The notes beneath the pieces were generated by a model. It did no database searches. It saw nothing but the letters and a program-made list of their open reading frames with translations, and had not been told where the DNA came from. Shown here piece after piece: positions 3,701 to 27,500 of a stretch of DNA of 64,000 bases; the stretch's first letter is position 1; every line of letters starts with the position of its first letter. The position numbers and the translations under genes were made by a program. This stretch comes from Takakia lepidozioides (taxonomy: Eukaryota; Plantae; Bryophyta): assembly GCA_030704615.1 (NCBI GenBank), contig CM060731.1:17980001-18044000 (forward strand), read 5' to 3'.

Positions 3701-6700
3701 TGTCAGGGCCAAAGGTTTTCTTTCAAGAGCAGCACAGACACATGCACCTGCAACTAAACATAATTTGCTTAAAGAACTGGTTTTGACAGCATATCTATAA
3801 CCCAGTGCCTTGAAAGATTTGATGCATAAGCACATCCCATGAAGTACTTCTTTGAAGCGTGTCAGCTATTCCATGAGTTCACCAGTGAATCGTGAGAGAA
3901 GCCCAAACAAAGCCACGGCAGTGACCAACACATACGGGGTTGAGTGAAGGAGAAAAGAAATACCCAAGTTTCTTAGTAGAGAGAAACAAAGAAGAGGGCA
4001 AAGGAGGGGAGGGAGTAGAGAGACCTTGTGATCTTGCCAGAGACGCGCAATTTCGTCCTCATAATATTTTACACGGGACCAGCTCCGAAACTGCCTGATG
4101 GCTTTGGGTGCAGAGACAAGGTTCTTAGGAAGCCTCTTCACCACATGTACATCCCCTTTTAATGCCTTTATGAAGTAGTCTACGTCGAAAATATCTGAAA
4201 AATTGCTGAACAGTAAAATGAGTAGTTTAGGACAATTATGCCAGCAACATAGTCAAATGATCAATCTGTAGATCTTACTAAGTGGCACCCAATTTTGCAC
4301 ATTGTGCTGGTAACTTTTTATTCATGCAACAACTTATTTCTATAAGAGTGCATGTGCTAGATGCTGGAAGGCAACCATTGCACACTCGCAGCAGAAAGTA
4401 AAGTTTGTCGAATAGAAGAGAAGCACAGAAACCTTGTACTAACGTAAGGTCAGAACAGTTCGAGGAATCACATTGTCATTGCATGGACAAACAGTAGAAA
4501 ACGTGGATCACCTAGAATCCTGCCAAAAAGATCGTTTATCCAGTTCTGGAACCACCAGGGTAGCATTTAATATGCGTGCCACTGCCACCATGTCACAAAT
4601 CTGCAAGTTTGATCAAAGGGTTAGCAGAACAGACCTAAAGATACATGCACAAGAGTTACTAACCTACTGTACTTGCCCCTGGTACAGATTTGTCAACAGA
4701 CTAGTCAGACCACTTATCAAACACAGCCTTCTGTTCCTTTGGGAATGCAAGCATGCAAGAGGCAAAAGACAAATACTTGGTACGACAACAGCTCGATGCA
4801 AGTAGTACATACAATGAGGGCCATACTCAGTAATACTGTGCTAAAAGGCTGGGAAGTCTTACCCCTGCTCGCATCTGATTGAGGCCTCCATTACTCTGTA
4901 CCAGAAGATAACCTCTAGTCTTGACTGGACCTGCTTCGTCATTTACCAGAATCCAAAAAGGGGTTGTCAGGCACATCCAGACAATTTGCAGCACTGCTAC
5001 TCAGATGAAAAGAGCTGACACTTTACATCCATGTCCAAAGCTTGCAAGACCATAACAAACCGTTATACCATCATGCCCAAAGACTAAGTGCCACAACAAA
5101 GTCATCAGTGGAAAAGGATACTGTAGCTCAAAAAGGGGTAAGAGACTAACCACGGTATGCAGGGCTTGCCTCAACACATGGAACAAAACCTCTATTTGGG
5201 GGAGGACTCCAAAGCTGCTTTCATCCCACAAGTAATTTCAGGTCTTACAGCAATGGCAGCAGCCTTTGAAACATTAGGCCACAGCTATAAAATTTCGAAG
5301 GTTTAGCTTCAAGCCTCGATTGACAATTTCAGATCAGTGACTACTATGGACAACATATGGTACGTATATCAAAGCTTTAGGTAAAGCACTAGGATAAAAG
5401 TACCCATTGTGGTGCACCACCTATAACCTCAAACATATATATTGCGGTGCACCTATTTAGGGAAACATTGTGCACCGCAAGAGGACTGACTGCACCTCGA
5501 CACCAAGTTAGGCCAATGCTGGATGATAAAGTGGCTCCCTAATATGAGCCAATTTAAGTGCATCATTACTTCTCCAATTCTCCCTCCGAAAAAATGAAAT
5601 TTTCTAAACCAACATCTGTGTCAAAGGGTGAGAGCCTCTCACCTTCTCATCGAGCTCACTATGGTGAATATGTACATCCAGATTCTTGGACCGTGACAAA
5701 TGAGGAGGAACAACCTCTTGCTTCCAACTCAATTCACCAATTCTGCTCTGCATTCCAAGATCACTCTGCCGGAGATTCTGGTAGGGCTTAATCTGAGAAA
5801 TGTCATGAAAGAAACACATACTTCAGTGCCCCCTAGACGCCCATGGACATTGTGAATTATGACAAAATGTGTACACTCTGATATAAAGCTTCATACCGGT
5901 CCAAGGGCCAGTACTCTGACAAAGCAGCCAAAGAGAAGGGAAATGTTCTCAAATGACAAAAGCTTCAAAACTTGTCACATTGGCATCTACTCCTTCACAG
6001 GAGTGACAAACTGTAAACGCTTCCAAACTTGTCCTTATTGCATCATAAGCAACTTGGAAGATGTTGCACAGTGGCAATTTCATTCCTACCAATCCCCTCA
6101 GTGTGGTACAACAGAACCTACCTGAATTCAGGTAAGTGGACTTTCATGCCAAGGTACCTCAATCTTATGAACGGTGAGAATCAAGGTCCAAACAGCATTG
6201 GGTAAGGAACCTCAAATTTATCAAGCAAGCTGTTTTGAAAAATGCAGTGAGGAGTGCCCCTGGTCAGACATGCTGAGAGGTGCACTCTGCAGCATGGCAT
6301 GAGTGAAGTTGGTTCAGCTAGCTCATTTACTTGCACCACTCAATTATTTGCTGTTCAGAATCCATTGTACACAGCTCTATAGTAAAATGTATCCAGCTTC
6401 AACCTCTTACACAGCAGTAAGGAATACTCTGGTTTGATAGTTTGCAAAACAACAAAACAGGGAAAGTCTACTTCTTGGCAACTGTAGGAGTATTCCATCT
6501 TTGGAAGGATGCACTCTTATGTTCCTCTGATCAAATAGCAAGCATAGTATATTCTTGGATGTGTGAATGTCTACATTTGTTCTATGTTCCGGCAGACTTC
6601 TGCCCTGCCAAATGACAGACCACAACAGAGTTATTTCCTTAACTATGTCTAGAGATCCTTCATTGAATGATACAGTCCCTCATAACCTTATTCCCACAAG

Positions 6701-7260
6701 TACAGAGAATCCGAAAAATACCAGATCAACTGCATCACATGTACAGCATTATGATCTCTTCCTTCGAACTTTTCATGTGAAAATAAGACTGGAAAAACTC
6801 TTAAACCCACATTGCCCACTATATCCTCATCCTGAGGATTTCCCTAAATTTCCTACAACTATTCCACCTAGAAATTGAGGGCCGTTACACCGTGAAAGCT
6901 TTCCAATATCACAGGTTTCCTTTAGGGGAATAAGCCTGTGCACAATGTCAGTTACGAGAGTCGTCTTATCCCTCATCACCCCCAGGGAATTCCTTTCACA
7001 GAGACCGCAACCAGAACTTCGTTTCATATTGGCTGCAAGAACATTGAGTTTGGAAGAAGTACCTTTGATAGCAAATAAGGCTGCGGGTATGGATGCCGCT
7101 GGCGCAAGATGTAAAGCAAATCAGGAAAAAGAAATGTAGACAGCAGCGCTGCCAAGCTGACGCTAAGGTAGCCAGAGAACCATAAAAAGCGAACCATGGA
7201 ACCTCGAGATTTTGCTTTGCAGCGCCGAGCCAGCCCTGATGCACTTCCTTGTCGTTGCAT
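721..7260 (-). CDS. O-fucosyltransferase family (DUF246/GT106) glycosyltransferase, 12 coding exons, about 584 aa
   Basis: Exons with GT-AG boundaries and consistent phases: 7063-7260, 5643-5792, 5151-5214, 4863-4930, 4512-4600, 4025-4205, 3403-3531, 2547-2680, 2167-2380, 1590-1774, 1389-1484, 721-967 (1755 nt). Family motifs: [136 protein letters not shown]. The N-terminal hydrophobic segment fits a type II Golgi membrane protein. Confidence 0.93.
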
Positions 7261-8479
7261 GCTGGTCGAAGGATTTTGACTGTTTCGGGTACTTTTACCG
7301 ACCTACGAATCTCTCTAAAGGTGGGTCGGGGAGCTAGAATTAATAGTTCGCATATGTCTATTTCTCCATGTCTTCATCTACCCAACTCCAGGAGCACGTA
7401 GGTACTATTATCTTCGATGGATAGGTAGGTGCCCAATCGTGGATCTGTGGAGGTCCGAACCAAGCTGAAACTTCTCAATCGCCACTAAAGGAAATTCGTG
7501 TGTATGCACTGCAAGTCAAGACTTTACGGAGAGTTTGAGATCCTCAAAATCAGTTGCAGGAACCTGATCGCGCTGACAATTTTTGCGAAGAGGTTCTAGC
7601 GTTGCATAGACTCAAGGCCGTTCGGTTCCACAATTTTTTCCTCGACGTCGTTTCAGACCTTTCGCACTGGATAATTGTCCAAAGTATAGTGACTACCAAG
7701 AGATAGTGAAGAGTCCGTATGACAGCTATCCATTCTGGAGAATACTAATAAATATAGAGATATGATAACCCACATGCAAGAAGTGGCATGGAGATCGGAG
7801 GAATATGGAAAGAACAACGAACTTAGATCATATAACTTACAAATCTATACTTCGAAGAACTCATGTGCTTGTCTAGTATAATGAAGTTCCGCGCTGTGGA
7901 GAAGACGTCGTGACAAATGCACTTGACAAAGGAAGTCCTACGGAAGCAGATGAGGTGGGGCACAAAACCACGTCAGCGAAGTTGATCGCTGGAAATGGAG
8001 AACGAGCAGGAGGTTCGAGCGCAATCTGACACTCAGAGAATGGAGAATCAGAACGAGAATGCGACACACCAAGGGCCCCCTAAAAATCCAAGCCTCACGA
8101 TCGGACGCGTGCAGCGAAAGGCTACAGAATTTTCCCAACCTTACAAGACAGAGACGGTAGAAATATACAAGGAGAAAACTACAGGCGGTTCAAGTCTGCA
8201 ATGCAGCCGAGATTGGAAATAAGCCGTTACATGGCAGTGGGAGAAACGGCTCTTCAAATTCAATCCAGGATCACAGGAGGGAGTTACGAACACAATCCCG
8301 AGTCAAAACAGGAGACTCCCCGCCTCCCCGCCTTCACAGACACCAATAGCTGGCGCTAGATTCCAGCGGAAATGAAACTCTTGCCAACTTGCTTCCACCG
8401 GGAAAGGGGATGCCGGGAAAAATGCCACCACCACAGACATACATACATTCACAGAATGCAATCTCTTCAGAACACTTAC

Positions 8480-8950
8480 ACGTATTCAGCAAAACTAGAC
8501 TCTAGATCCTAGCAACCCCACCAGTTGAATCGAATCTCACTCACTCCCTTCTCTCCCTCTCTCAAACCCATGTAGCTCCTGCACACCCCACCTCCCCAGA
8601 CACACCACATACTCCTCCTTCCTCTCTCCAAAACCCATTCTTGTATCACCGCCATCTCTCCTTGCTCTCGCTCTCTCCCTTCCATGCGCGCTTCCGACAT
8701 GACTACAAACAGCGCGACGCGGGAGCCGAGACGGACCACGACACAGTAGCCGGCATTGCAGGCGCAGTGTAGGGCAACGCCACCAGCCCCGGTGTCGCCC
8801 GCTATTTGGGCGGCTCGCCCGCCCGGGCCCCACCGCGCCCGCCGCGTGTCTGCCGCCTGCCCCCGAAAGGCCTACCCGGTGTTTCGGCCTGCCTTAACGG
8901 CCGCGATTAGCCTCCTAATTTGCAGTTGACCCAGTCGGCCGAGTCTGGTG
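8480..8950 (-). promoter_or_regulatory. Probable 5' UTR/promoter region of the O-fucosyltransferase gene
   Basis: CT/GA-rich tract (8540-8690) followed by a GC-rich island (8745-8910), upstream of the minus-strand start codon. Positional inference only. Confidence 0.35.
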
Positions 8951-11900
8951 CCTAACTAACTTCCGCTTTGCAGTTGACAAACTGACTTCCCATGTAACCT
9001 ACATGCAGGTAATTCTCTTCTGGAAGGATGAATGCCTTGCCCACTGTTGCTACTGAAGTGGACTTTCAGTCGCCTCGGACTACTTACAAGTCTTCGCAAA
9101 ATCTTTGTCAGTTGGCGGAATAACTTAGCAGTGATCATCCGCACCATCGCACTTTGGGTAAGTTGCTGCTTATTACGAAATCGCTCCTGTTACTTGCGGG
9201 TGCTTTTGTTTTCTTTGCGGATCCTTGTGAATTGCATATTTTGTCCAATCCTCGCTAGTTGCTAGGATCCCGAACTGGGCGCTGGCTGTCGTAAGGCTTG
9301 TTTAGCCGCAAAATAGATCAACATTTTGTACATTGGTGCGCCTCCGTCACTTACACACACAATGTTATCGGTGAGGGAGTTTATCCACCGGTCCGATGGC
9401 TGCACAACTTCCATTGAACAACATCAGTACTGCTAATGAATTATTAGTGCTCTCCACACACATTTCATGTGGGTGCAGGGTTTTTTATTTTTATTTTATT
9501 TTGATATTAGGAAAACACCTGGGCGCGGCTGCAACTCAGGAGGGTTGTTTCAGTTAGAGGCAAAGCACAAAGAACCCACCTGCTATAATCTATCATCTAC
9601 AATCTAAAATAACCTATAAGCTATAGACTATAATTGTAATCTATGACAATCTATAGTAATCTATAATCCATAAAAAAAACAATAGGAATAATTAAGAACT
9701 TAATGCATGCGTGTCATCTGACGGTACTTTCGCCAGATTCAGGGATCCGGCTGGCCCTGTCAAATCCTCCCCACCCCCTCGTACCCACGAGTCATTCTTA
9801 AATGCTTTAGAATGCAGAAGTTTGTCAAGCAGTGGTGAGTAGCCTACTAGTAAAAGGGGATGGCAGTGTAGGCAGGAGCTGCGTTTGATTTCCGATATGT
9901 TGCTAGTGTAACCCCGTTCTGGGTTGCTGAAACCCTTGGCAGTGTCACCTTGTGTCTTGTGTAACTCCTCTTAGTCCATCTTGGACTTGTCAAATTTCGA
10001 GGCCGAGTGCGAGTTACATTGAGTGGAGGTACACTCCGCATAAGATGGTGTAACCCCCGGTGGAGTTTACACTCCATCCCATGTAACCCTGCAGTTCCAT
10101 GGTGGGGAAGATTTTGACGTGCCAAGAATCCGCGTCCGTCCTGTCAGAAATTGCACGTGTGAATTAAGTCCTAACATTAATCCTAGTATTCTCCAATTCT
10201 TAATCTGCAATTATAGTAAGCGGACATATATAGACACTATTTCTCATGCAGAATGATACTTTCATCCATGTGCGGCTTGAAAGAGGGAGGTTTTTTGTCA
10301 TCCGTCCATCATCCATGGCACATGGCACGGCAGATGAGCCAACCGTCCGGAAGTAACCGCGACAGGTAAGCCGGGTCCAAAAGCGACCCGGAACAGCTGA
10401 ACGTACCGACACTTGGACGTATAGAGAGGGCGCGTATATACGAAGTAGGTCGATAGGGACGGAGTACAGTACGGAGGGCGGGGCAGGTGATGGCCGGTAA
10501 GTCGCAGCGAGACGTTGACGGAGGAATGAATGTCTGGCGCACGCGCGTCGAGGAGCGAGGAAGGTGACGAGAGGGCTCGCAGATCGATGCTGCGCAGCCG
10601 GGCCTCGTGCAGCGTCGTGAGCACCACCGCGTCCTTCATTCCTCGCCCACGCAGCACGCCCGGCTGCAGAGGGGGGAATAATGAGAGAGAATTTGGGAAT
10701 CCGAGCTTTAATGGTGCCTGGATCACCGCAGGGAAGGGCCGTGCCTGCTAGGCTTTCTTTGATCTCTGATGCGCAGCGCAGAATGACAATTCAAAAGTTC
10801 TGAAGTAATATCAGTCAAGGAGTTACCTACTACTATAAGGAGCCCACCTTTTTTCCTGTACAGAGCCCTGAGTGTAATTAGAACTTCTCAATCTAGAAGG
10901 AGTAGAGTGAGAAGACGTGTGGGGTGAGAGACGAGATCAATTATCGAGATTGTTCTGCGTGAGTCGCTTTGCATGAGGCTATCGATCTGTCACTGATGAG
11001 CACCGCTATACAGATCAGTCCATTCCTCCGACGAAACCTGCCAAATGGAAGAAACCAGCTACCACAGGAATAGCTAGCACCGCTCAGGCTCCTCTGACTC
11101 AACTGTACCAACAGTAAGTTCCTCAGTTGACATGGGTGGTGTGGTTCTCAGCACATACCGCCATTTCCTGGGAGGAAATATAAAATACACAACACAATTG
11201 TCATCCTCCTCTCCTGCACCCCACAGATTCAGTCAATGTATCAAATTTGGCAGGGAACATAGCAACATGAGGTAAGCTAAACATGCGAAACTTTCGAAGC
11301 CACGTCTTCCTCCCTCGTTTGGGGTCCTCGAAGACTGTGTCATTAGCTATGTGCCAGCACGCCATCTTCCAAGGTTGGCCAGTTGCATGATGGTGGTGGT
11401 GGTGGTGTCATGAATGCTCCCTCCTCTACGATCAACCCAAATGCTTCACTAGTCAAGCAAAAACTCTTGTAAGCTTACACAGTCACCTCATTTGGGTCTT
11501 CTACAAAGCTTTACACAGATTGTCATAATGGGTGATCTTCTCTCTCACCGTCTCAGATTCGAATGGATTAGCATACAAGAAATCAGCAGGGTTTCATGAT
11601 TCAGAAGCAACCTCTCAAGTGACCTCCTAATAAGTAACCGTTTACTTAAGTCTTACCTCGGAGGCTCCACTCTCATCCCTCTAATAAAACTAGTACAACA
11701 ATGTACATGGGTCTTAACGTAAGACCGATCTACTCGGGATTAGGTCCATCATAAATGCATTTTACCTCGAAGTAGCCGTTTGCATTAATGTGTTCTCGCC
11801 ATGTACCATAGCCATGCCTCGTACCGTAGCAGCATGATGCCATCATGCATCATGCCCGGGTGGCTTTGGGGTCCGCATGTTGGCATCATGCCCATTCTGT

Positions 11901-12003
11901 ACACTCCTCCTCACTACTATAAATGGAAGTTTGTTTTATAGAAAAAAGGCTGATTCTTGTCGAAAAAAGTGTATATTATGGTGTCGCCATTCCAAAGTAT
12001 CGA

Positions 12004-12083
12004 CCAACAGTCAGTAGCTCAGTTGGATAGAGCACTGAGTGCCACCCACACGATTCTGGGGTCATATCCTGCTACATAGTTGG
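12004..12083 (+). other. Degenerate tRNA-like sequence (tRNA-derived SINE head or tRNA pseudogene)
   Basis: Contains an A-box/D-arm GTAGCTCAGTTGGATAGAGCA and a degenerate B-box GGGTCATATCC. Flanking CCAAC...GTTGG could pair as an acceptor stem. No recognisable anticodon arm. Confidence 0.4.
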
Positions 12084-12849
12084 CTGTTGTATGATTTTCT
12101 CCCCTTTCCCTTGGGAAGTGCCTCAATCGCAAGCCTTCAACACAAGGTTATTATGAAAGAGGTTGTTTTCTCCTCCCACTATAATTAAGGGGCATGATTT
12201 GTGAGCAACCGGATGTTAAATGACAACATCCAAAAATTGGAAGTGACTAGATCGGCTATCGATGAAAATAATCAAATAACCACCACCCAACAGTGGGTAT
12301 TGAGTGACTCAACAGCAGAGTTAAAAATGGCAGGGTTAAATGTGGCCATGGGGCTTGTTGGCCTTTTTTGTAAGAATTTAAAAAGTAACACTTCTATAGT
12401 AAGTTAGCACCATAGTCAAATGTGTGATAGAAATGGATGCATGACCATGGATGGAATGGCATCCCAAAATAGTCAACTAAACATACATAGGTTCATTAGG
12501 GGGCGAAGGGGGATAAATAAATAAGTAAAAAGGCTAAAAATGGGCTTAGCAAGAGGCATGGTAAATGAGAGTATATTAAAAGCAGGTAGTTGTTACATGG
12601 TGTCAGTAAAAATTCAGAGCATTGATTCAATTCACTGTGGTGCCGCTTCAAACTGATCACAATATTATGACTACATGAGGATCTCCCCTCTTGATCTTTG
12701 ACATCCTTCTTATCCCTCTCCCCTGATGATGATACTCCTCCGTTTGAGGATCAAGAGCGGAGAGGGACAAGACAGATTTCAAAGGCACAAGTTTCTGAAG
12801 GCATATCTGCTATGAGTGAGCTTCTCCATTGTTTGTCAACTGTATGTGG

Positions 12850-15800
12850 GTGCTCGGAAGTAGTCAGGGAAGCAAAACATGTGGTGGTGTTTTAGCCAGA
12901 AACTATGGAGGTTTGGAGTTCAGTTATCGGATGTCTGAAACTGTGTTCTGGGCCCCACTGAACAAGAGAGAGAGATGGTTGATGTAATCAACATGATGCA
13001 GACCTCGGTGTTCTCCCCATCACTGCATGATTCATGGTTGCCCATGAAAAGAGTGTGAGACTTGGTTTCCTGAAGAGCTGTTTCAAGCGAGTGATTTGCC
13101 ACAACAAGTGAGGAATATGATATGCAGCCCACCCAAGACGATGGAATCAACATGTGGTGTGTCGAGCATGCAAAGCCTCGGGGCAATATAATTGAACAAT
13201 AATTCATTGGCTCCCCCTCACATGCCATCACAAAAGTTGCTACATGAGTGTGCATGTTGTGGGCACTCCAGCAGCTCTGGAAAGCGACAAGGAAACAGTT
13301 TTGAGGCCCCTTCCCAATAAAACAAGACGGTGACACCGAGCATGATAAGGGAGGGAGGCCTACCCAGTCTGAGAGCTTGCCCACTCTTATGCACTTTTAC
13401 GCATCAGCAAGGGGACCCTTTCAACATTTGCTTGAGATTAACAATTGGAAAGTGGAGCCCAGGTGGCAAAGGCGCACGAAAGCGACAAAGTACCGTAGTT
13501 GTAGCGGGTGTTGCATTTGGTAGGAGTAAGGGTTCCTCTTCGTAGTCGAAATGAGAGATGGACTCACTATTCTGGATGATGAAGCTCCTTGCACAGGCCC
13601 AGAATCTCGTTTGGTTGTAGGGTCGTCTTTTCATTGTGTTGGGCTACTCAAACTTCCATATCATGTTACTCCAATCCATGTATGTATGTATAGGTCAGCC
13701 CGGTAGGACTTTGTTGGGCTTTTAGGAGATGTTTAAGGTCTGAATTCTGTTAAGAGACTGTGTGCCTGAAAGTACACAGTGAAGGACAACCCAAACATGA
13801 CCCGTCTGCAGGAACTCTGCAGGTATTTTTTGGGAGTAAGACCATGGACATGCAAGCAAAAGGACATGTGGGTTAGAAAGCCTGTCAAATGCATAACTCA
13901 TCACATATCTGGGCATGGCGATTGGAAGCTCCCTTCGTGGAATGAGGCTGTCCTTTGAAATGCAGAGAAATATGTTACCTTAAGATAGGCAATCACTGAC
14001 AGCTGACTAAGTTCCCAACCCTGGCATTGACCATCGAGGTCGGCGGACGAAACGTTGGAGCGTTGTCAGGTATTACAAATTATTACACTGCTCTCTCTGG
14101 TTGTCAGTGCGCAAGCACCTTTCCACGCTTCCTAAGGGGAGCCACATTCCAGAATCCACACTGCAAGGGGAGAATATCCAAATGCAAATCTGAATGTTGA
14201 GGGGAAAGCACTGATATGGTCTGGGCCTCTATGAAGTGTATTCCAAAGACCCTTGGTTGATGGTTCAATATTCCGACCTTTTCCGAGGCCAATCAATGTG
14301 GGCCCTGACCCCCACAAAGAAAAGGTACCCCAAGAACTTGGAGGGCTTACCTGAAAAGGTAGGTAGGATTTTACCTTCGTTTTGTGAATGAGTGCCTGAT
14401 CAAAATCTTGCCATAGCGGGACAATACAAGACAAGCTGGGAAGCTTTGGGCCTTTCCGTGGTCATTACTGGCTAAAGCCAAGCTCTGCACATTGCAAAGG
14501 ATGATTGTGTTTCCTGACTTCCAATCATCGTCATTATATCTGCAGTTTTGGATGGAAACAGGGAAGGCCTCAGTTTCCTTTTTCTCTCAAAACATGTCAA
14601 TAGTGGATTGAATGTCCAAGCAGAAGGGTGTCCCATCTCCCGTAGGACTACCTGATTCAGCGTAATCCATTCATGTCTTTCCTTGGTAGCATTCTCATAT
14701 GATCTGAAAAGACATCCACATTCTCTGAAGTAAGCAGTTCTTCCAAAAGTACCTTAACAAAGTAGTAAGTATGGCACACCAAACGCTCAAAACTGCATCC
14801 TGGGTTTCTTTAAATGTGTTTCTACCATCAACAATCGAGATTTCGATTTTGATTTTGATATTGCATTCATAGCATCACCGGCCTCACGTCAGAAACTATA
14901 CCTCTTCATGACCGAGCAATTTCAACTCTCGAGTCTCACCTACTTTGCAGAGATACTCGGTTCTCGTACCACACCTACTAACCTGGTACAGAGTAAATGT
15001 ATGATGATGATAAAAATAGTCTTGCAACCTTCACCTAAAACACGCACCTGAGTCTCCTGGGTACCATTGCCTATAAGTGGTAGACCACATCAAAGCACAG
15101 CTATATGCATACAATTGTCAGGGTACGCTCTTGGCTCAGAATCTTTAACCTTTTCAGGGATAAAACTACAAACATGACTTGTTTGTAGCGCTTAGCAAGG
15201 TACAAAGTACAAAGAAAAGACAAAGGATCTTACTTTTTCTCTGTAGTGAACGAGTCCTAGAATGTTGAAGAAACACTTCACTAAAACCAGTCCAAAGATG
15301 TGGCAAAGAGAGTTGGTTAGGTGAGATAGTTTGTAGTGATTGACTTGGTTGTTCAGTCTTTTGGGGTCCCACAATATCAAGGATTTACAGAGGACGTTAG
15401 CCAGGGCATAAAGTTAACAAAATGGGAAAGGGCAATACTTCTTCCAATCATCCTCAAGATGGTATGTTGTGTGTTGAAAGAGAGTAGTGGGGTGTGCTCT
15501 CAACAGTACGTTGAAACTCTAAAGGAATAGAAGAGAATGCTGCTGGTGATCAGCTGCAGACTGGAAGAAAATACAGTGTTGAAAAGGCAGCAGTGTAGAC
15601 TGGAATCCTAATTCTTGGTTATTGTGTTTGTGGTTAGCTATAGACATGTCCAATTTGGGTTTTTACAGCATAGAGTTTTCCCTCACCACCTCTCCTGCTT
15701 CATCCACTAGTGATTTGTGGATAAGTTGTGCCCCACTTCCCTTGTGGAGTCACCATAAAATACTACATTCTCATTGACTGTTTCTACTGGAACACAGACC

Positions 15801-17250
15801 ACTCCCAGAGGCAGTATGTTTAATATCTCAGAAACGGATTTAAGAAAGAGACCAGCATTCACTCACTACCCGCAGGCACAGACATCATCATGCTCTCTTT
15901 GGAGCTGCTGGCACAGGTATAGCACTGTGGTAAGAAGCCACAGCTGAGCTTCCAAGTCTATATCACAAGAATGAGATACGATGCCGATGAAGGTAACAGT
16001 GGGAACCTTTGTCTTTTCCAGGCAGGCTCCACCACAGCCCCTAGAAGGTCGACCCCTGCCATTTGTAGTCATGAATGCTAAGGCCCCCTCTCCACCAATA
16101 TCATGACCTTTTGTCATCAATGTGTAGAGAGTGTCATGTGCATAGAGACTGTCCTCCAACAACGAATATGCTCGAGGGATCCAGCCTTAGATCCCCTTGA
16201 ATCCATGAAACCCATTGGCCTGCCCAACATCAACATTCAATCGCGGCGTGTATTCATTAGCCGATGCTTATCATAGTCTTGTGGCCATAGGCCATGTGGT
16301 TCATTTGATTAGAGCAGAAAAGCAGAGATGGGCCCATGAGAAGAGTGGGTGAGTTCAACTACCAGCACAGGGGACTCCCTCTAGTGCTGGGAAAGGTAAT
16401 TCTGGCCTTCCAGATGCTTTTTAAGGAGGCTCTTTACCATAGCATCAATCAACACAATTCTTAACCAGAGCACTGAGAACCAAGGAGATCACAGAGTCAG
16501 CACCTTAGTTGACATGCTCATCCTGGGATAAACCTGAAGGCTATGCAAGAAGCTCCTACTTTGGTTTGAAAGCCTCTTCTCTTGGAATCACCTTGGGATC
16601 TCATTTGCACTGCTGGGAACACCCATCTCCCAGAGTGGTTGGTGAGGTTCGTGATGGCACAGGCACTCCAGTACTGAGCCTGCCATTTTGAAATGAAATG
16701 CAAGAGTCAAAAGTCACATCGACTGCTACAGAGCTGTACCTTTCCAGCCATATCCAGGGCACACGATATGGATGTCTCGATAAGAGGGCAAAAGTGGGCT
16801 GCCAATGGCTTGCACTTTGAAATACCAGATAATAGCTGTCTTGATGTTGGATGAAGTACAAGGTACTGAGATTGGCCACTGACCTCACTACTGTATCATC
16901 AAAGACAACACGTTGATGTGACAAACCCCATCACTCTTGCTGGCAGGAAACACTTGAGAGCTTGCATCAGTTCAGGCATATGATACAATGCCCACTTTCA
17001 ATCAGTTCAGCCCCATCTACTTATCCCAGGTGGCCAAATCTGATAGCAATATACATGCAAGCATGGCCACATTTCGAACTCTGTACATCAGCGGTGTCCT
17101 GGGACGGATGTGTTGTTCGCAGAGCATAGTACAAGTAGGTACCCAAAGCAAGGAATTCCTGATCGGCGAATGTGCAATGACATCCACCTGTCAGATATAA
17201 CCTTGAGAGAGAACAGTCCTGCACTGCACATGTCCATACAGGTACTTGCT
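12850..17250 (-). pseudogene. Heavily degenerate, intron-containing KDZ (Kyakuja-Dileera-Zisupton)-like transposase relic
   Basis: Collinear motif remnants on the minus strand: C-x-C...C-x-H (about 17060-17190), VPADGSCLG (D at about 13804), CT(H)...EGEP (about 13210-13255), FACSTH (YDxAC-like, about 13165-13180), FHG-NHESCS (13024-13050) and a frameshifted S-E-Q-L-N-S-K-like stretch (about 12912-12935). Many stops and frameshifts; boundaries approximate. Confidence 0.45.
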
Positions 17251-18169: not shown

Positions 18170-19290
18170 CTATTCACTGCCCGGTGTGTTGCAAGTTGTG
18201 TGGCATCAAGTGTTTTAGGGTTTTCTCACACCTGAAAAGCAACATAACGGAGTGCTAATTCTGTATCATTGGGAACTACTTGCACAATGGCTGTCAGGGG
18301 ATTCTGAGTTTTTGCTTCCCACACGGCTTTGCTCCAGTGATGATCAATGGTCATGCACTGCTTGGCTCCAGAAAATTCTCCGTTAAAGCAAAGAACCCAC
18401 CTCATGAATTGCGCACAATACAAGTAGGAAGACAACAAAGCCCAATAGCAGCAGAAATACTGGCTGTACTGCATGATAAATTTGGACTGAATATGCTACA
18501 GGAGATGTACTTCCAAAAACACTGGATTTCGAAAGTGGAACCAACCAGCTCGCATTCAAGACTTCCAGTCCCGATATCAGAAGACGCTCCGGCGGATTGT
18601 GCACCCAATGTTCAGGCTTCCCAAGAACTGGGTCAATGTCTCCATGCTGGCCCCTTTCACAGGAATTGGTGCTCCCCAACCCACCACCCCTTCCACTAGA
18701 TCCTTGCTCGTACCTCCCGGCACAATGCTGTCATTCCTATGCTTCACGATGGACAGGAATGTAGCAGCAAGCCCTGATATATGGCTAGAGAGGGGAATCT
18801 TGGTGGGCTAGTACATGACGAAGACGACAACCCATGTGGTTTGCATAACGAAAGCCCTGAACGGACCGTTTACTAGCAAAAAAACATTCGTTCGTTCCGT
18901 TTTGGGGTTGTGTTTTGTCCGAGTGTGCAGAGTGTTGCAGCGGCGTTGCAGAGAAGGGGATGGTCTTGGGAGGGGCACGCGTGCCTGCGTGTGAGTGCGG
19001 TCCGGAAAGAGGAAGGGGGCATGATGGTGGGAGAGCCCGATGCTTCAGTTGAGGAAGGAAGGGGCGGAAATGTCACTGTGCACGCGCGATGCTCTAACGG
19101 CAACAAGTTCCCTGGTATGTGCGGGAGGGAGCCGTTTTGCGGATTAGAAGCTTAGCTAGGTTGCTGGGTTTTTCTCCTAGGAGTGTCTAGTCAGCTTGTA
19201 TTCCCCGTTCTCGTGGATGCCAATTGGGAGAGCAAGTCATGGCAGAGTTTGTCGGGTGCTTGCATTTTCCGCAAAGGGTAACGTCTGAAG
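18170..19290. repeat. Direct repeat copy 1 of the ubiquilin upstream region plus truncated exon 1
   Basis: Collinear near-identity with 23279-24590, for example ACACCTGAAAAGCAACATAACGGAGTGCTAATTCTGTA and GGAGAGCCCGATGCTTCAGT. Lacks about 170 bp of ubiquilin exon 1 (most of the UBL domain). The junction reads CCTG|GTATGT, a canonical donor at 19115. Confidence 0.92.
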
Positions 19291-19517
19291 GAGACCAAAT
19301 TTCCCGGCATAGAGAATTTCATCGCATGGCAGGGAATGTTTGGATTGAAGGTTCTCATCAAGCCTGATATTTTGTGTGCAGTTGAATGCGCTCATAGGCA
19401 TGTGCTGATGTATAGAGCCTATGACGTTCTAGTGCACCTTCTCCCAATTCGCAGTTAGGCCTGTAATATTTTGCACCATTCAAACTGGACTGTCTATGCT
19501 ACGTCAATTTCATTACG

Positions 19518-21128
19518 ATGGCTTTACAAGATGAGATTCTCTTCGAGACCCAAACTTTCAATGAAGAAACCACTGGCTATGGAGCGCCACAAGGGCTGGT
19601 TGCTGGGCGAATTTACAAACATGGAAAATGGACAGCAGCTGAGACAACGATCTTGGTGGAGTGCAAGCGAAGGGATTGGGAAAAGCATGGACCTGGGGCA
19701 AATAGGAGAACTTTGATGAGCACAGCCGCAGAAAGGTGGTCAGCAATGGAGGAGGAAATGGCTAAGCGTGGAGTGTTGCGATCCAAAAACCAAATCCAGG
19801 AGAAGTGGGAGCAGCTGTCGGCAGATTTCAAGAAAGTTTTTTATTATGAAAGACGCATCCCCTCTGGTCGTCGGAGCTATTTTCAGATGAATCCTCAAGA
19901 GAGAAGAGAGAGCACTAGCCCTAAATTTCCAAAATGCCTCCTTGATGAGGGTGTGTACAAAGCATTGTGCCAATGGTTTCCTCAAAAATCACAGGCTGTT
20001 GACCCAGGAAACCTCCCCATTGATTCATCAAGGAGACCAAGCAATAGAGGTACATTCAATTGAAACCGTGCTTGAAAACTTTGGCAGTAAACCACATCTG
20101 GTGAACTGTTTTCCCAATTTTGCACATGGTTAGAGGATGATGCTACTACTTGCTCTAACAGTGTCGGATCTTTGAGTGCCATGACATTTTTGAACGGGAG
20201 AAACGGCGTGACAGTCCTCTCTATCTAAAACTCCACTGAAAAAGAAAATGTGAACACTCTTTAGGGTGGCAGGTCTACTTCATTATTTTGACAGTTTTGC
20301 ACATAGGCACTCTTGATTGCTCCTTACTCTCACAGTATTGGATCTATGCGTGCTTTTGGAAAGCTATGGTTGCCACGGTCCTCTGGGACAAAAATCTGGT
20401 GGTCAAAAAATCTGAACACTCTTTAGGGTCCCCCCCCCTGATCTGGTTCATTATCATGATCGTTTTGCACATAGGCATTGTGCTCCTTACTTGCTATCAC
20501 GGCATTGGATGTTTGAGTGTTATGGCATTTTGGAATGCTAGGGATGCGATGGTCATCAATGTCAATAAATCTGCTGGGAAAAGGAATATGAACATTCTTT
20601 AGGGTGCCCCCCCCACCCAGTTCTGTTGACAGTTTTGAGCGTAGGCACACTTGATTGCTATGGCATTTTGGAATGATAGGTATGCCAAGGCCTCACTGTC
20701 AAAGATTCTAATGGCAAACAATATCCAACCACTGGTTAATGTTATGTTTAGGTAGCCCCGTGGAGGAGGGTCAGTCTTCCCAGGATGGGGGAGGGGATCA
20801 ATCTAGTGACATCCACAACACCAAGAAGCGCCGGTTGTCTGCAAAAGTTTCCGAAGAAGCTATTTCAGCAATGGAAAATAACAGGAAGGAGATGGTGAAT
20901 GCAATGTTCACGGGACAAGATCGTGAAGATGTTCGGCACCGAGAATCAATTGAATTGGAGAAAGAGCGAGTTCACCGAGAAGACACTCGCCATCGGGAAA
21001 TCTTGGATCTTGAAAGGGAACGCCTGGTGCATACCACTGATTTGGGACGGGGTTACATAAAAGCTCTATTAAGTATTGGGGAGGGGTTAAAAACCATTGG
21101 AGAAGCAATGAAAAAACCTGGCAATTGA
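19518..21128 (+). CDS. Myb/SANT-like trihelix DNA-binding protein (Harbinger ORF1 type; SH4/ASR3-like trihelix signature), 2 exons, about 302 aa
   Basis: Exon 19518-20049 (donor AG|GTAC) splices in frame to 20752-21128 (acceptor TTTAG). Trihelix tryptophans in WTAAET...RWSAMEEEM...RSKNQIQEKWEQLSADFKKV, followed by SYFQMNPQERR...VYKAL. Also a KKRR putative NLS and a C-terminal coiled coil (ELEKERVHREDTRHREILDLERERL). Confidence 0.85.
20245..20760 (+). repeat. Three degenerate tandem copies (about 160-180 bp) inside the trihelix intron
   Basis: TGAACA(C/T)TCTTTAGGGT...GTTTTG..TAGGCA recurs at about 20251, 20413 and 20589. TATGGCATTTTGGAATG recurs at 20521 and about 20659. Confidence 0.7.
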
Positions 21129-21266
21129 AATCAAAGAGTTATTCTTGTTCCATCTCTAGGATATGATGTAGTTTGTTCATATGATCATGGAGTGGTAGCA
21201 CTAGAGCACTACACTCTGACTGTATCAATTTAAATTGAAAAACTTTATTGATGAAAGTGTACTGCA

Positions 21267-22601
21267 TCAAGGAGACAAATGTTTGGCCATGACCATTTGC
21301 AGTTGTTTTGCTTCATCTACAGTCGTTGTATGAGAGTACTCGTTGCGGTAACCCTCGTCATGATGACCCCACAAAACAACAGACTCATCTATTTCTTGTC
21401 TCCTGTCTATGATGATGTTGTGCAGGATACAACAGGCGGAGATTAAATTAGGAACTTTGCCCAAATCAGGGTTTACCATGGCAGTCTTCAGAATGCGCCA
21501 CATTCCCTTGAGAATGCCAAATGCACGCTCAACCACCATCTTTGTGGAAGAAAGTTTGTAGTTGAACTGGTCGTAGATTCCTGGAAGATTTTGACCAGGC
21601 CATGGAACGAGCATGTGTGCACTACCGATATATCCTGCATCTCCAATGATAAACTCTTTGACTTGCATGCCTTCAATTTCCACTACTTGCCCATTCAAAC
21701 GTTGTCCACTACAAACAAGATGGAAGTGGGGAGAACCGCTGAAAACCTGAGCATCATGCATAGACCCTAAACCTACAAAGACATCCGTAAACCTGACTTC
21801 TGCATCAACAATTGCCTGAAGAATCATGCTGCAATTGTGATCTCGATCATAATAGTCGGACATTCGCATTTTCTTCGAGAGCTCCAATGGTATATGGGTG
21901 CAATCAATGGCACCACAACATTGTGGAATGCCATGGAAATTTTCGAACCCAACCTTTACACGAGCCAATTCCTCACCCTCAGGCCAATGGAGGTGTTTTG
22001 GCATGGCCCGCTGAACCAAAGCCTTGACGAACCTTCCGCAAACCTTGGCACATGTTGAATCAGCAACCCCGAACATCTCCCCCACTGTCATGAAAGAATC
22101 CCCGGTGGCAAGGCGCCTCAAAGCAATTGCGACCTGCTTTGGGATATCCATCCAACGTCCAACAATAGTTCTCAAGCCTGGAGGAGGTCTCTTTTCCAAA
22201 TCGGAAGCAACAAGGCCACATATGTATTCAAATGTGGGAACAGAGACACGAAAGAACTTCCGGAATCGGTCAAGATCCTCGGTCATAACAAGATTTGAAT
22301 ACTGGTCCCACCAATGTACAGATCTGGGCTTGATATAACACGGGCCATAATCAAGACCAAGAGTTTCAGTCTTTGTCGCCCTTTTCACAGCAACTGCATA
22401 CGCCAATTCTTCATGGTCTTGCATCACACTTACGATTGGGCCCCAATTTAGTCTACTGCTTTTCCTCTTGAGTCCTCTACTTGAAATTTTGTGAGAGGGT
22501 CTCTTTTTTAAATCCTCTTCAGTGGCAAGTTGCATAGCCGTACCAATAGCGGCACTTGCTGCAATCAAAGAGGAATAAATAGCCTCACTCTTGTTACTCA
22601 T
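21267..22601 (-). CDS. PIF/Harbinger DDE nuclease (HARBI1/ALP1-like), 444 aa from the first ATG
   Basis: Uninterrupted ORF. Motifs FRKFFRVSVPTFEYIC, KQVAIALRRLATGDS (HTH), CCGAIDCTHI (D, 21903-21905), HDAQVF, IIGDAGY (D, 21639-21641), VVERAFGILKGMWRIL (E, 21528-21530), ACCILHN. A splice acceptor TTTGCAG at 22623 implies an upstream exon. Minus-strand AATAAA at 21244-21249. Confidence 0.93.
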   Translation of the reverse strand: MSNKSEAIYSSLIAASAAIGTAMQLATEEDLKKRPSHKISSRGLKRKSSRLNWGPIVSVMQDHEELAYAVAVKRATKTETLGLDYGPCYIKPRSVHWWDQYSNLVMTEDLDRFRKFFRVSVPTFEYICGLVASDLEKRPPPGLRTIVGRWMDIPKQVAIALRRLATGDSFMTVGEMFGVADSTCAKVCGRFVKALVQRAMPKHLHWPEGEELARVKVGFENFHGIPQCCGAIDCTHIPLELSKKMRMSDYYDRDHNCSMILQAIVDAEVRFTDVFVGLGSMHDAQVFSGSPHFHLVCSGQRLNGQVVEIEGMQVKEFIIGDAGYIGSAHMLVPWPGQNLPGIYDQFNYKLSSTKMVVERAFGILKGMWRILKTAMVNPDLGKVPNLISACCILHNIIIDRRQEIDESVVLWGHHDEGYRNEYSHTTTVDEAKQLQMVMAKHLSP

Positions 22602-23278
22602 ATCGTTCTGTATGCTGTGAAACTGCAAAGCCCAAAGTCAGTTGCCGTCAGAGGTGAAATCATCATGCATGTGTTGACTTGAAGAAGAAATGCATTACAT
22701 GGACAGAAACGGTAAATAAGGAGCCAAGCCTGGTATACGAAACTGAAGCACTATAGTGCCAAGCAGAAACGAGGATGGAGCAAATCCCCTGCGCATTTTC
22801 TCCATAGAGCGACACAAGACAATATTGACAATCATCCAGGGAGTTACTCCAACACTAGAACAAAGGGTACAACTTATGAGCAACAATGATTCTTCAAATA
22901 CTGAGCATACATGTGAACTATTGCCAAGCTTCACATCCTAAAATGACACACAAATCACTGACATATAGGGAGGATGAATAAAGCAGCACAGAGAATGCTC
23001 CTGTTTGGAGATTTTGATTAAGAGAACAGACGGCCCCCAACAGTGCTCTCTTTGGGAGATGTACATGGACAGTTACCTTCACAATCACAATTTACAAGCG
23101 TACAACAAAAATGGCTGCTTGAAAGACTAAAGATAAGTTTCACAACGTCATAATTGGGCAGATAGATAACCCTGACTATAAGACAATGGAAAAACCTAAA
23201 ACTGAAGAGCTTCATTCATCAGGCAGTCCCAACGCTATGCAGAAGCAGACTCTCCGTAATCTCAACTTCCCTCAACAC

Positions 23279-24590
23279 TATTCACTGGCCAGGTGTGTTG
23301 AAAGTTGTGTGGCATCAAGTGCTTATGGCTTTTCTCACACCTGAAAAGCAACATAACGGAGTGCTAATTCTGTAAGATTGGGAACTACCTGCAATGGCTG
23401 TCAGGGGATTCTGAGATTTTTCTTCCCACACGGCTTTGCTCCAGTGATGATCAATGGTCATGCACTGCTTGGCTCCAGAAAATTCTCCGTTACAGTAAAG
23501 AACCCACCTCATGAATTATGCACTATACAAGTAGGAACACAACAAGCCCAATGGCAGCAGAAATACTAGCTGTACTGCATGATAAGTTTGGACTGAAAAT
23601 GCTACAGGAGATGTACTTCCAAAAACACTGGATTTCGAAAGTGGAACCAACCAGATCGCATTCAAGACTTCCAGTCCCGATATCAGAAGACGCTCCGGCG
23701 GATTGTGCACCCAATGCTTCAGGCTTCCCAAGAACTGGGTCAATATCTCCATGCTGGCCTCTTTCACAGGAATTGGTGCTCCCCAACCCAGCCACCCCTT
23801 CCACTAGATCCTTGCTCGTACCTCCCGGTACAATGCTGTCATTGCTATGCTTCATGATGGAGAGAAATGTAGCAGCAAGCCCTGATATATGGCTAGAGAG
23901 GGGAATCTTGGTGGGCTAGTACATGACGAAGACGACAACCCATGTGGTTTGCATAACGAAAACCCTTAGTAAATGGGAACGGACCGTTTACTAGCACAAA
24001 AGCTCTTTCTTTCTTTTTTGGGGGTTGTGTTTTGTCCAAGTGTGCAGAGTGTTGCAGCGGCGTTGCAGAGAAGGGGATGGTCTTGGGAGGGGCACGCGTG
24101 CCTGCGTGTGAGTGCGGTCCGGAAAGAGGAAGGGGGCACGATGGTGGGAGAGCCCGATGCTTCAGTGGAAGCAGGAAGGGGCGGAAATGTCACTGTGCTC
24201 GTGCGATGCTCTAACGGCAACAAGTTTCCTGTGGCTGTGGATTTGTTGTGCACAGTGGGGGAGTTGAAGGGTCTGCTTGTGGAAAGATCTGAGATTCCAG
24301 CCCTCCAGCAGCGCCTCATATATAAAGGCCGTGTGCTCAAGGATGAGAATTCGCTTGATAGCTATGGTGAGTGTACTTGGCCGGCTGGTTTGGTACGGTG
24401 TCTATCCGGGAGGGAACCGTTTTGCGGACTGGAAGCTTAGCCAGGTTGCTAGGTTTTTCTCCTCGGAGTTTCTAGTCAGCTTGTATTCCCCGTTCTCGTG
24501 GATGCCGCAGAGCAAGTCATTGCAGAATTTGTCGGGTTCCCTCCTGGTGCATGCATTTTCTGCAAAGGATAACGTCTGAGGGAGACCATG
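23279..24590. promoter_or_regulatory. Direct repeat copy 2: native ubiquilin promoter, 5' UTR, exon 1 and start of intron 1; likely bidirectional
   Basis: Matches 18170-19290. Lies between the divergent 5' ends of the minus-strand nuclease and the plus-strand ubiquilin. Carries a minus-strand splice signal TTGCTTTTCAG|GTGTGAG at about 23340. Confidence 0.75.
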
Positions 24591-27500
24591 ATTCTCGCCA
24601 TTCATTTGTCGGAGAATTTTCTCTGCTACAATGGCAGGAAATATTTATTGCTCCATCTGGTTTGATTTGCTTGTGTCTAATTCGGCATCCTTTTCCGAGG
24701 TTGAAGGGCATGAGTTTCCTGTAGGATAGCGCACAGATATTTTGATTTCTACTTTTACAGGACATCAGGTGTCAATATTGTGGACATGCTGGTAGGAAGC
24801 CGCTGTAATTCATGTACATGGCATCGTGTACTTCTGGAAGCCATAGGCTTAGGAAGGTGGAAAAGTATGAAGAGGGTGGAAGCTTTTGTGCTGTTTGATT
24901 CTTAACACATGCATTTTGAAGCGAATAATGTAGAGAATAGTAATAAGCCAAGACTGTCAAGGTGTGGGGATAGTGTACCATGCAACCTGCAGTAGAGTAG
25001 ATGTGCTTCTTTCGGAATGCCCTCTACCCTGATCTGGGTATCTTGGTTCTATTGACCTCATCATGGCGAATCTGCTAAGGAGTCTGTTGCCCTCATGGTT
25101 GCTTGTATGAATTTCTCTTTGGGTACAGTCCCTAGCTGTATTTTTGGAGTTGAAACCAACTCAAAAATCATAGCTGAGAAGCTGCTGAATGAAGGGCATG
25201 GTGGCAGGCCAGACCTTACCAATTACAAGTTGAACTTGGGTTGTGCAATGTATGTTGTTGTGTGAGTTCCAGTGAAATTTTCACCATGCATGTCATGCTG
25301 TTGACGTGACCACGATCAATTGATGCTACCAGGGTTACAAGCCGAGCACACGGTGCATCTGGTCCGCGGAGCGCCATCAAGTTCACCGACGTCAGGTGGT
25401 CCTGCACCCATCTCTGTTCCAACAGCAGTCTCTGAGACTTCAGCTGCTCCAGAAGCCAATCCTACAGGTTTAGGGCTGGGGGACCTTGGCTTCCCTTACT
25501 TGGGGGAAATTGGCGCAGGTGGCACTGCTGGTGCTGGGTTTGGCACGGGGTCTTCTGATTTTCAGCAGGTGCAGCAGCAGCTGATGCAGAATCCCAACCT
25601 CATGAGAGATATGATGAACATGCCAGCAGTGCAAAGCCTGATGAACAACCCAGATCTTATGCGCACCTTGATCATGAGCAACCCACAGATGCAGGATATT
25701 ATTGACCGGAATCCTGAACTAGCCCACATCCTAAATGACCCTGGAACGCTTCGACAGACTCTGGATGCCGCACGGAACCCAGAACTGATGCGTGAGATGA
25801 TGAGGAATACTGACCGTGCTATGAGTAACATTGAGGCTTCGCCAGAAGGATTCAACATGCTGCGGCGTATGTACGAGACAGTTCAAGAGCCTTTGTTGAA
25901 TGCAGCTACCATGGGAGGGGAGGGAGGGAACGACTTGTCCTCCAACCCATTCGCAGTTTTACTGGGTGGTCAGGGACTTACACAAGCAGCAGGCACCACT
26001 GCCCCGGAAAGCACTGGCCCAACTGGAGTAGGCACTGGAACAACAGTTCCCAACACTGCGCCTCTTCCAAACCCTTGGAACCCCACGCGTAAGTGTAGCT
26101 ATATCTTCTCCATCTTTGTCTGTGTTTGTATAGCTAAGTATCCTAATTCTGTTGAAGATATGCTGCTCTGTTGCAATTGTCTTGTCTGTCATCATCTTTG
26201 CTTGCTTAAAGAGTGAACCACCTGCCAATATGTGATAGGCAATATATTTAGGAGGGGAACCTCCTAGGTACAACTTGCTTTTGGTGGAAGCATGTGGTTT
26301 CAATTTTTGGACACATCTTGTGTTGCATTGCCCAGTTCGATTGCAAAGCCTGGAGGTACAGGACAGTGCTATTGTGAAAGCTGTGTGTATTTGTAAAGCA
26401 TGATTGGATTAGCGTTCGACTGCCAAGACTTAATATAGGAGGCACCCTTGGATGGCCTTTGTTGAGAACAGCTCCTCTACAGGTTCCCCCTTTGTTCTTT
26501 CTGCCAGCACTGACTAGGCAGAGATTCTATCAATGGTTGGCCAAACCCTCTCTGTACTTGGTGGACATTCTGGTTAAAGATGTATCAAAGAGTTGCAGTG
26601 CCCTGCAGCAACCTCATAAACCATGGCCCTTGCCTTGCATGGTGCAAGCCATTAGATTTACATCCAGCCTTACTGCCTTGGTTTATGCAACAATGGCAAC
26701 AGCTATTGGCGCTGATGCAGGTACTGGAGGAGCAACTGGAACTGTACCCTCTAGAGGGGCGGGCATGGGACTACCTGTCTTAGGAGGGCTGGCAGGGCTT
26801 GGCTTGCCAGACCTTGGGACATTGAATGGAGGGGGCCTTGTGGATCCCGCCTCTATGCAGCAGATGTTGCAGAACCCGGGCATTCAGCAGATGATACAGG
26901 GGGTGCTATCTAATCCTCAGTACATGAATCAGGTACAGCCCTGGGTCACAAATTTCACTGTCTGGCTTGGCCAGTGTCTTTGTGCAGTTCTGATCACACC
27001 TCAACTCACGTGGTGGGCGAATATGGAACATGGTCTGGTACTGGCCAACGGTTTGGAGATCTATGAAGAGGGTTAGTAAGGACAAGCTACAAGGTGTTCT
27101 TCAATTTCCACCAGGTCTATGTTGGAATGATGGCATGGCATGCATCGGGTGTGCAGGTGATGAACATGCAACCACATCTTCGCACTTTGTTGACTGAGAA
27201 CCCTCAATTCAGGGAAATGATGCAAAGCCCTGGTTTTGTCCAACAGATGAGCAGTCCGGAAAGTTTGCAGGTACACCCTTCGTGTCGTGCTCTCTTCTTG
27301 AATTATTGTTTAGCCTTTTTGTAGATATCATCTGGTAAGGCTACAGCATGGAGCATCTTACGCTTACACCTTTGTTCCACCCAGGGGTTGCTAGCTAACC
27401 ATGGCTGCAGGAATTTGTGGATGAGTGCTGCACGGATATTATAGGGGGCTATGCATGTTTGGAACCTGAAAGGTCAAAGTGTGATAAAGTAGGCAATGAG

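Follow-up and report, generated by a model that had tools for sequence, protein, structure and literature searches.

A linked Harbinger nuclease-Myb gene pair in the ALP1 group of Takakia lepidozioides, transcribed from a duplicated host promoter and probably maintained by its host

For two pairs of plant proteins, ALP1 with ALP2 and HDP1 with HDP2, the proposed origin is co-domestication of both genes of one Harbinger transposon, and in each case the two genes are reported to be unlinked (PMC7282668, PMC5339849). Homologues of ALP1 occur in all groups of land plants including bryophytes; they are single copy and have no neighbouring DNA-binding gene wherever flanks were available, and the DDE triad is conserved in them outside the angiosperms (Liang et al. 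2015, PMC4671723). Since the triad is reported intact in these non-angiosperm homologues, its loss, which reads DGA in Arabidopsis ALP1, defines angiosperm ALP1 only (PMC4671723). ALP2 has been traced only down to ferns, always without three tryptophans and never adjoining ALP1 (Velanis et al. 2020, PMC7282668). The other pair, HDP1 and HDP2, is a co-domesticated Harbinger pair within the Arabidopsis IDM histone acetyltransferase complex, and HDP1 and ALP1 are reported to fall in separate clades (Duan et al. 2017, PMC5339849). Here we describe a Harbinger-type nuclease gene and a Myb/trihelix partner gene that lie side by side in a 64,000-nucleotide stretch of the genome of the bryophyte Takakia lepidozioides (contig CM060731.1, positions 17,980,001 to 18,044,000), which we refer to throughout as the window. 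We conclude with moderate confidence that this pair is maintained by its host, that is, that it represents an immobilised PIF/Harbinger pair at an early stage of co-domestication, in a lineage sister to that of seed-plant ALP1.

The nuclease open reading frame (ORF; 21267-22628, minus strand) comprises 453 codons from a TTG, or 444 amino acids from the first ATG at 22601, and matches the Pfam families DDE_Tnp_4 (E 1.2e-26) and Plant_tran (E 4.9e-13). An earlier inspection of the letters alone, which we call the sequence-only reading, had reported two intact convergent ORFs, three catalytic acidic residues, a set of ALP1-clade motifs and a GWPGS motif that is one residue short, and each of these observations holds. 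Both ORFs are present where they had been placed, and D242 (GAID), D330 (IIGD) and E367 (VVER) fall in the catalytic columns of alignments made with 29 and then with 80 relatives. Every motif of the set is found in the protein, including KQVAIALRRLATGDS, CCGAIDCTHI, RLNG, CCILHNIIID and the HHDEGY tail. Indeed, the nuclease agrees with 31 of the 32 columns conserved at 90% or more; it departs only at the proline of G-[WFY]-P-G, where GWPGS has become G-L-G-S, and this is the sole row among the 81 aligned with a residue deleted there. In the AlphaFold2 model the core is confident (a predicted local distance difference test score of 82) and the N-terminus is predicted to form a long helix at residues 11-41. 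A sequence search against solved structures gave no match, Foldseek returned weak matches to DDE transposases and integrases only, and the protein atlas yielded only generic HARBI1 and DDE_Tnp_4 clusters.

The partner gene, on the plus strand, lies 138 nt from the nuclease stop codon, and the layout is tail to tail. Its ORF at 19518-20063 (plus, 181 codons) matches Myb_DNA-bind_4 (E 3.3e-10). The sequence-only reading was correct in seeing a Myb/trihelix gene that converges on the nuclease, and erred in taking it for one intact ORF: RNA contigs divide it into three exons, with a coding sequence of 19518-20047 plus 20750-21128 that encodes 302 amino acids. Exon 2 (19381-20047, coding from 19518) carries the Myb/SANT/trihelix domain, in which the tryptophans W38, W74 and W97 are all retained. 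The coding part of exon 3 (20750-21128) encodes a KKRRLS motif, a coiled-coil stretch with REDxRH and a block of the form GYIxALxxIG; all three are kept in every partner relative that we found, and the exon is conserved in loci L001, L002, L007, L009 and L011. Database searches with the partner used its exons separately, and the joined 302-residue model was compared only with the fetched loci. The intervening intron 2 (20048-20749, GT..AG) contains a tandem repeat of ~170 nt in about four copies (20097-20690; repeat families D7-D9 and D11), part of which is covered by low-depth RNA contigs, and the equivalent intron is only ~115 nt long in L002, one of the mobile elements described below.

Around the pair lies a feature that the sequence-only reading had not mentioned, a direct duplication of ~1.15 kb. 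Copy A (18179-19345, defined by direct repeats and pairwise alignment) and copy B (23288-24625, defined by direct repeats, RNA contigs and Pfam matches) enclose the ~4 kb (19346-23287) that hold the nuclease and its partner. The two copies are 93% identical, and their 1155 aligned nt differ by 79 substitutions (K ~0.07) and 12 indel events, one of which is a 168-nt segment present in copy B and missing from copy A. Copy A contains the 5′ part of intron 1 and the first exon of a host gene that we call gene X, a bidirectional promoter, a truncated exon 1 of a ubiquilin gene and the start of ubiquilin intron 1. In copy B ubiquilin exon 1 is intact, with its ATG at about 24140, and the gene continues rightward; Pfam finds ubiquitin in the copy B exon and the UBQLN1 domain further right. 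Gene X exon 1 of copy A (18546-18800, minus, 5′ limit approximate) has its donor at 18546, where loose RNA contig ends fall at 18545/18546, and matching of such ends joins it to exons ending at 17223, 16678 or 16218, all to the left of copy A. The exact counterpart of this donor in copy B is 23652, and RNA contigs end there as well. Because the remaining gene X exons lie left of copy A and ubiquilin continues right of copy B, the original locus had gene X and ubiquilin diverging from one bidirectional promoter. In the present locus, gene X and the partner diverge from copy A, and the nuclease and ubiquilin diverge from copy B.

Some further observations concern gene X and the origin of copy A. 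We considered whether copy A might be cargo of a larger Pack-Harbinger element, a possibility that is ruled out by the splicing of downstream gene X exons to the copy A exon. The ORFs of gene X gave no match in a Pfam search. In run X5 (sample S2; the runs are introduced below) the copy A version of gene X exon 1 contains two 1-nt insertions, at 18610 and 18683, that neither the reference nor run X6 has; given these two single-nucleotide indels between samples the exon is probably non-coding in gene X, the alternative being frameshift differences between the samples.

Transcript evidence shows that both genes of the pair use host exons. The 4-kb core is complete in four DNA runs of one sample, and ~60-66% of it is present in two small runs from two other studies, X5 and X6, which behave as transcriptomes. 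We compared the RNA contigs over 18200-24199 with those of DNA run X1. Three canonical GT..AG joints occur in the RNA contigs and none of them occurs in X1. Two, 19113>19381 and 20047>20750, belong to the partner and are present in both X5 and X6, and hence in two independent studies; the third, 22622>23652 on the minus strand, belongs to the nuclease and is carried by one X5 contig, with 30 nt on the far (exon) side. The partner mRNA begins in a ubiquilin-derived exon of copy A (partner exon 1, 18992-19113, plus, with its true start at or upstream of 18992), which is spliced into the partner gene, and the mRNA contigs extend at their other end to 21209 in X5 or 21346 in X6. Similarly, according to the single RNA contig, gene X exon 1 of copy B (donor 23652) is the 5′ exon of the nuclease, separated by an intron of 1029 nt (22623-23651, minus, GT..AG) from the nuclease exon (acceptor 22622). 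These captured host exons may add only leader sequence: the ubiquilin ATG at 19021 in partner exon 1 opens a 57-codon upstream ORF that ends at 19458, out of frame with the partner ATG, and an ATG at 23855 in the copy B gene X exon is in frame with the nuclease, with a possible extension of 68 amino acids.

Two side observations were made on the same contigs. The convergent RNA contigs meet, or overlap by up to ~160 nt (21185-21346), in an interval that spans the nuclease stop codon, and an antisense overlap between the 3′ ends of partner and nuclease is therefore possible. In addition, an X5 contig on the copy B gene X exon (loose end 23651) runs into the gene X exon at 16189-16218, 7.4 kb off; copy B transcripts may splice across the whole pair, or the placement of this contig in copy A versus copy B may be ambiguous.

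Autonomous PIF/Harbinger elements are recognised by terminal inverted repeats (TIRs) with a 3-bp TWA target-site duplication, by a DDE_Tnp_4 nuclease with a D-D-E triad, by a second gene of the Myb/SANT/trihelix type, and by their presence in multiple similar copies. The window pair has the nuclease and the second gene, and has neither TIRs nor a target-site duplication. An inverted-repeat search (seed 8) over 19050-23400 returned only chance-level 13-24-mers, and the sole bracketing inverted pair (19092/22641) sits in the duplicated host sequence, so that no TIR bounding the two genes was found. The TIR of a related mobile family has no match at three or fewer mismatches across the 64-kb window, and a search for a degenerate TWA-GGGC pattern produced only chance-level hits. 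DNA run X1 yields the pair as one unbranched contig of 4168 nt at depth 27, equal to the depth of the single-copy flanks, and this speaks against near-identical copies at other sites of the genome; the many near-identical, TIR-bounded copies that the sequence-only reading had named as grounds for refuting its proposal are not seen in this run. With no TIRs, single-copy depth and host 5′ exons, the window copy is no longer a transposon, and in this respect the proposal that it represents a transposon lineage with catalysis and architecture preserved is overstated.

The same data bear on the possibility that a functional autonomous Harbinger is merely stranded at this site, its ends lost by rearrangement. 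Such an element would act in trans on Tourist-like MITEs (miniature inverted-repeat transposable elements) or Pack-Harbingers, and the host-exon transcripts would be a by-product of where it landed. This explanation accommodates the intact DDE triad with 31 of 32 near-invariant columns, the three tryptophans of the partner, and the existence of sister sequences in active-looking elements with TIRs and target-site duplications. It sits less well with the single-copy depth and the lack of any signal from a close paralogue in X1, with a nearest known relative that is just 58% identical, with the residue deleted from the conserved G[WFY]PG loop in the window row alone, and with a window in which the TIR-like sequence of the related family is nowhere present. 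We regard it as rather unlikely, though the most probable of the alternatives considered.

The coding sequences themselves appear to have been preserved. In the reference neither the nuclease ORF (1362 nt) nor the partner ORF (909 nt) contains a single frameshift or stop. At the rate of the flanks (12 events per 1155 nt, over two lineages) the 2.27 kb of coding sequence should have gathered about 12 indels, and the number observed is 0. The X5 and X6 contigs likewise cover coding parts without gaps and with substitutions only: X5 has three in the nuclease (V66I, L40F and a synonymous change), and both runs share H252L in the partner. The absence of indels from the coding sequence as compared to 12 in the flanking duplicates points to purifying selection on the pair, on the assumption that pair and duplication are of equal age and that no gene conversion has occurred between the duplicates. 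The ratio of nonsynonymous to synonymous divergence (dN/dS) against the 58% relatives would be uninformative, given the saturation of dS and the purifying selection that acts on active transposases too. A young, dead insertion would have intact ORFs simply for lack of time, and its transcripts would be read-through from strong neighbouring promoters. Flanking duplicates only ~7% diverged would suit such an insertion, as would the low-depth contigs that also cover the intron and the spacer, but the indel deficit, the absence of near-identical sibling copies from X1 and the precise splicing, with partner joints common to two studies, make it very improbable.

To place the nuclease we used a careful maximum-likelihood tree of 48 rows (LG+C20) and a quick tree of 78 rows. 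The ALP1 anchors in the tree are RefSeq-named proteins, Arabidopsis ALP1 itself and HDP1 not being among its rows, and the RefSeq-named ALP1 and ALP1-like rows of the same species came from a second search started from the Cryptomeria protein. As the ALP1-named rows carry D-G-V/A in the triad positions and thereby match the published Arabidopsis DGA, they are valid anchors; the ALP1-like rows carry D-D-Q, and the gymnosperm rows, like the window, D-D-E. In the 48-row tree the nuclease lies within a 31-row land-plant clade that holds ALP1 (support 97/91), and the placement near ALP1 suggested by the sequence-only reading is thereby upheld. The HHDxGY tail is common to exactly these 31 rows, the window included, and sequences from ferns, Chara, Apatococcus and animals, together with a second Cryptomeria type, are placed outside them. 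The nuclease groups with P0006 and P0004, which are its nearest relatives at 58% identity (both partial, on short contigs), in a subclade with support 100/98 that also contains P0003, P0002, P0005, P0143 and the solo gene P0122. This subclade is sister (97/91) to Marchantia, P0149 and the seed-plant ALP1 and ALP1-like proteins, the seed-plant clade itself having support 100/100, and the quick tree is consistent with this arrangement. Full-length relatives are 45-48% identical to the nuclease, Marchantia 44%, Cryptomeria "ALP1" 43% and angiosperm "ALP1-like" proteins 38-40%.

Linkage to a partner gene is uncommon among these relatives. The flanks of 80 fetched metagenome loci that carry nuclease relatives contained no partner (0/80), no partner gene was found at the P0149 locus, and P0122 is a solo gene that adjoins a phosphomannose isomerase gene in several samples. 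The closest homologues of the partner, at 64%, 61% and 51% identity, are stand-alone genes where contigs are long enough, and the contigs of the closest relatives (L011, L014 and L015) are too short to decide linkage. The 61% partner relative and the 58% nuclease relative come from the same metagenome. The reading of the locus as an immobilised pair draws on both of these patterns, since the closest relatives of both genes share one metagenome and since closer partner homologues stand alone and most nuclease relatives are solo genes.

The Marchantia polymorpha homologue in the ALP1 group (L016/L017, 8001-9521) is a solo gene whose triad is dead and reads G-G-D; in a related representative the triad is G-S-D. 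This departs from the published statement of a DDE conserved in every group basal to angiosperms. We also examined the convergent neighbour of the Marchantia gene as a hidden Myb partner and rejected it, as it has no similarity.

In fact, the subclade of the window nuclease includes Harbingers that have been mobile. P0005 and P0143 lie on two contigs of assembly ERZ25073694, in elements of 4.15 kb (L002 and L012) that are 95-96% identical to each other, and a third contig of the same assembly holds a 97% identical fragment of the element. Each 4.15-kb element has a 16-nt TIR, GGGCCTGTTCGCATGG, with a TAA target duplication, and a tail-to-tail Myb gene whose coding sequence is divided between two exons as in the window partner; the DDE triad is intact in P0143. 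In L012 (ctg132312, 4655-12989) the element lies between the exons for the TIR domain (here the protein domain) and NB-ARC and the exons for the leucine-rich repeats (LRR) of a nucleotide-binding, leucine-rich repeat (NLR)-type resistance gene, and is probably a recent insertion into this TIR-NB-ARC-LRR gene. Because the subclade contains multicopy two-gene Harbingers that are bounded by TIRs and duplicate TAA, a two-gene transposon lineage that lies close to ALP1 and has kept its DDE triad does exist. The sequence-only reading had proposed that the pair could represent the lineage that gave rise to ALP1; its expectation of a nearby two-gene DDE transposon lineage is borne out, whereas the descent is not, the subclade being sister rather than ancestral to ALP1. 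The window pair resembles L002 and L012 in belonging to the same subclade (100/98), in the tail-to-tail layout and in the two coding exons of the partner. The mobile elements have the GGGCCTGTTCGCATGG TIR, the TAA duplication and copies at 95-97% identity; in contrast, all of these are missing from the window pair, whose 5′ exons come from the host.

How does the locus compare with the domesticated pairs? Like ALP1, the window nuclease belongs to the land-plant DDE_Tnp_4 clade, has the KQVAIALRRL block and the HHDxGY tail, is single copy, has no TIRs and is expressed. It differs in lying in a sister subclade, in its D-D-E triad (D-G-V/A in the ALP1-named and D-D-Q in the ALP1-like proteins), in its long N-terminus with a WYIKPRS-type block, where ALP1 has a short MGPxRG-KKRK start, and in the Myb gene alongside, which ALP1 lacks. 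The partner keeps W38, W74 and W97, whereas all ALP2 proteins are without these tryptophans (PMC7282668). In a comparison made by eye only, none of the ALP2 blocks NWLDRLRS, SRSEVTVIDTS and VWKVRxKK (S1 Text of PMC7282668) was seen in the partner, which by the same inspection resembles HDP2 and ordinary Harbinger Myb proteins rather than ALP2. These comparisons bear on whether the locus might be a true orthologous ALP1/ALP2 pair, an ancestral, linked accessory module of Polycomb repressive complex 2 (PRC2) in which the nuclease would bind the partner and the partner would bind MSI1, by analogy with Arabidopsis. Membership in the land-plant ALP1 group with its shared HHDxGY tail is in keeping with that possibility, as are the single, immobile and expressed copy and the fact that bryophyte homologues were counted as ALP1 by Liang et al. 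2015 (PMC4671723). We consider it distinctly unlikely, however, for the subclade is sister to Marchantia plus seed-plant ALP1 rather than inside that group and holds mobile elements, the partner has the three tryptophans missing from every ALP2 protein and shows (by eye only) no ALP2 blocks, and ALP2 is known only down to ferns (PMC7282668).

The resemblance to HDP1 and HDP2 is of another kind. There too, both transposon proteins have been retained, are expressed and are immobile, and HDP2 shares with the window partner the three DNA-binding tryptophans and a C-terminal GD(E/K)LIxxL-type block. HDP1 has lost its triad and is unlinked to HDP2, whereas in the window the triad is intact and the genes are linked. 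The route of capture has a counterpart in SETMAR, a host-transposase fusion that arose by exon capture, and transposase capture in vertebrates was reportedly treated by Cosby et al. in 2021. As in such fusions, host exons at the window locus are spliced to a transposase exon, with an acceptor just upstream of the ORF; unlike a SETMAR-type fusion, this locus captures both genes of a two-gene element by way of a duplicated bidirectional promoter. Our literature search found no description of mobile elements inside the ALP1 group, of a linked nuclease-partner pair in that group, or of both genes being captured by a duplicated bidirectional promoter.

We therefore return to the reading of an immobilised, host-maintained pair and to how it may have come about. 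A host segment with the bidirectional promoter and the first exons of gene X and ubiquilin would have been duplicated around the pair, and the loss of the element's ends together with capture of both halves of the duplicated promoter would have left an immobile pair under host transcription. Judging from Harbinger biology, nuclease and partner may still form the usual heterodimer, with the C-terminal coiled coil of the partner bound to the N-terminal helix of the nuclease, and the three-tryptophan trihelix domain would presumably confer sequence-specific DNA binding. The host may keep the pair for a role in chromatin or DNA targeting, as with HDP1/HDP2 or ALP1/ALP2. Nuclease activity may be retained.

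Several points weigh against this reading. Capture of a promoter by the nuclease is seen in a single contig whose exon side is 30 nt long, the label of X5 and X6 as RNA is a guess, and their contigs give neither expression levels nor transcription starts. The argument for selection presumes a pair as old as the duplication, duplicates that evolve neutrally and no gene conversion between them, and the duplication looks far younger than the 42% protein divergence that separates the nuclease from its nearest known relative. Further copies that have diverged, or dependent MITEs, may lie in other parts of the genome. The intact DDE triad and the tryptophans fit an active transposase equally well, so that their retention alone is no proof of a host function, and the comparison covers the locus in this species only.

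Elsewhere in the window, a long array at 58042-60357 is built of units of ~52-53 nt, each with a GC-rich palindrome (AAGCGACCGCC...GGCGGTCGCT) and an A-rich spacer, and a tandem duplication of about 320-330 nt with 98-99% identity lies at 49671-50319.

A DDE-intact relative of ALP1 in a bryophyte was already known from Liang et al. 2015 (PMC4671723); what the locus adds is a probable Harbinger co-domestication within the ALP1 group. The bryophyte-type branch of this group still has mobile elements accompanied by a Myb partner, a qualification to the 2015 inference that domestication took place once, in the first land plants. The locus also offers a concrete route to domestication, in which the ends are lost and the two halves of a duplicated, bidirectional host promoter are captured. 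One could go further and see in it a living intermediate of ALP-type co-domestication, a linked and possibly catalytic pair that was fixed and wired into its host in one step by promoter duplication and already works with Polycomb or another chromatin complex. We think this unlikely; if it were true, the mobile clade-mates would mean that the domestication of ALP1 postdates the last common ancestor of land plants or that it happened repeatedly. A pair with an intact triad and intact DNA-binding tryptophans makes it testable whether binding to chromatin complexes came before or after the loss of catalysis.

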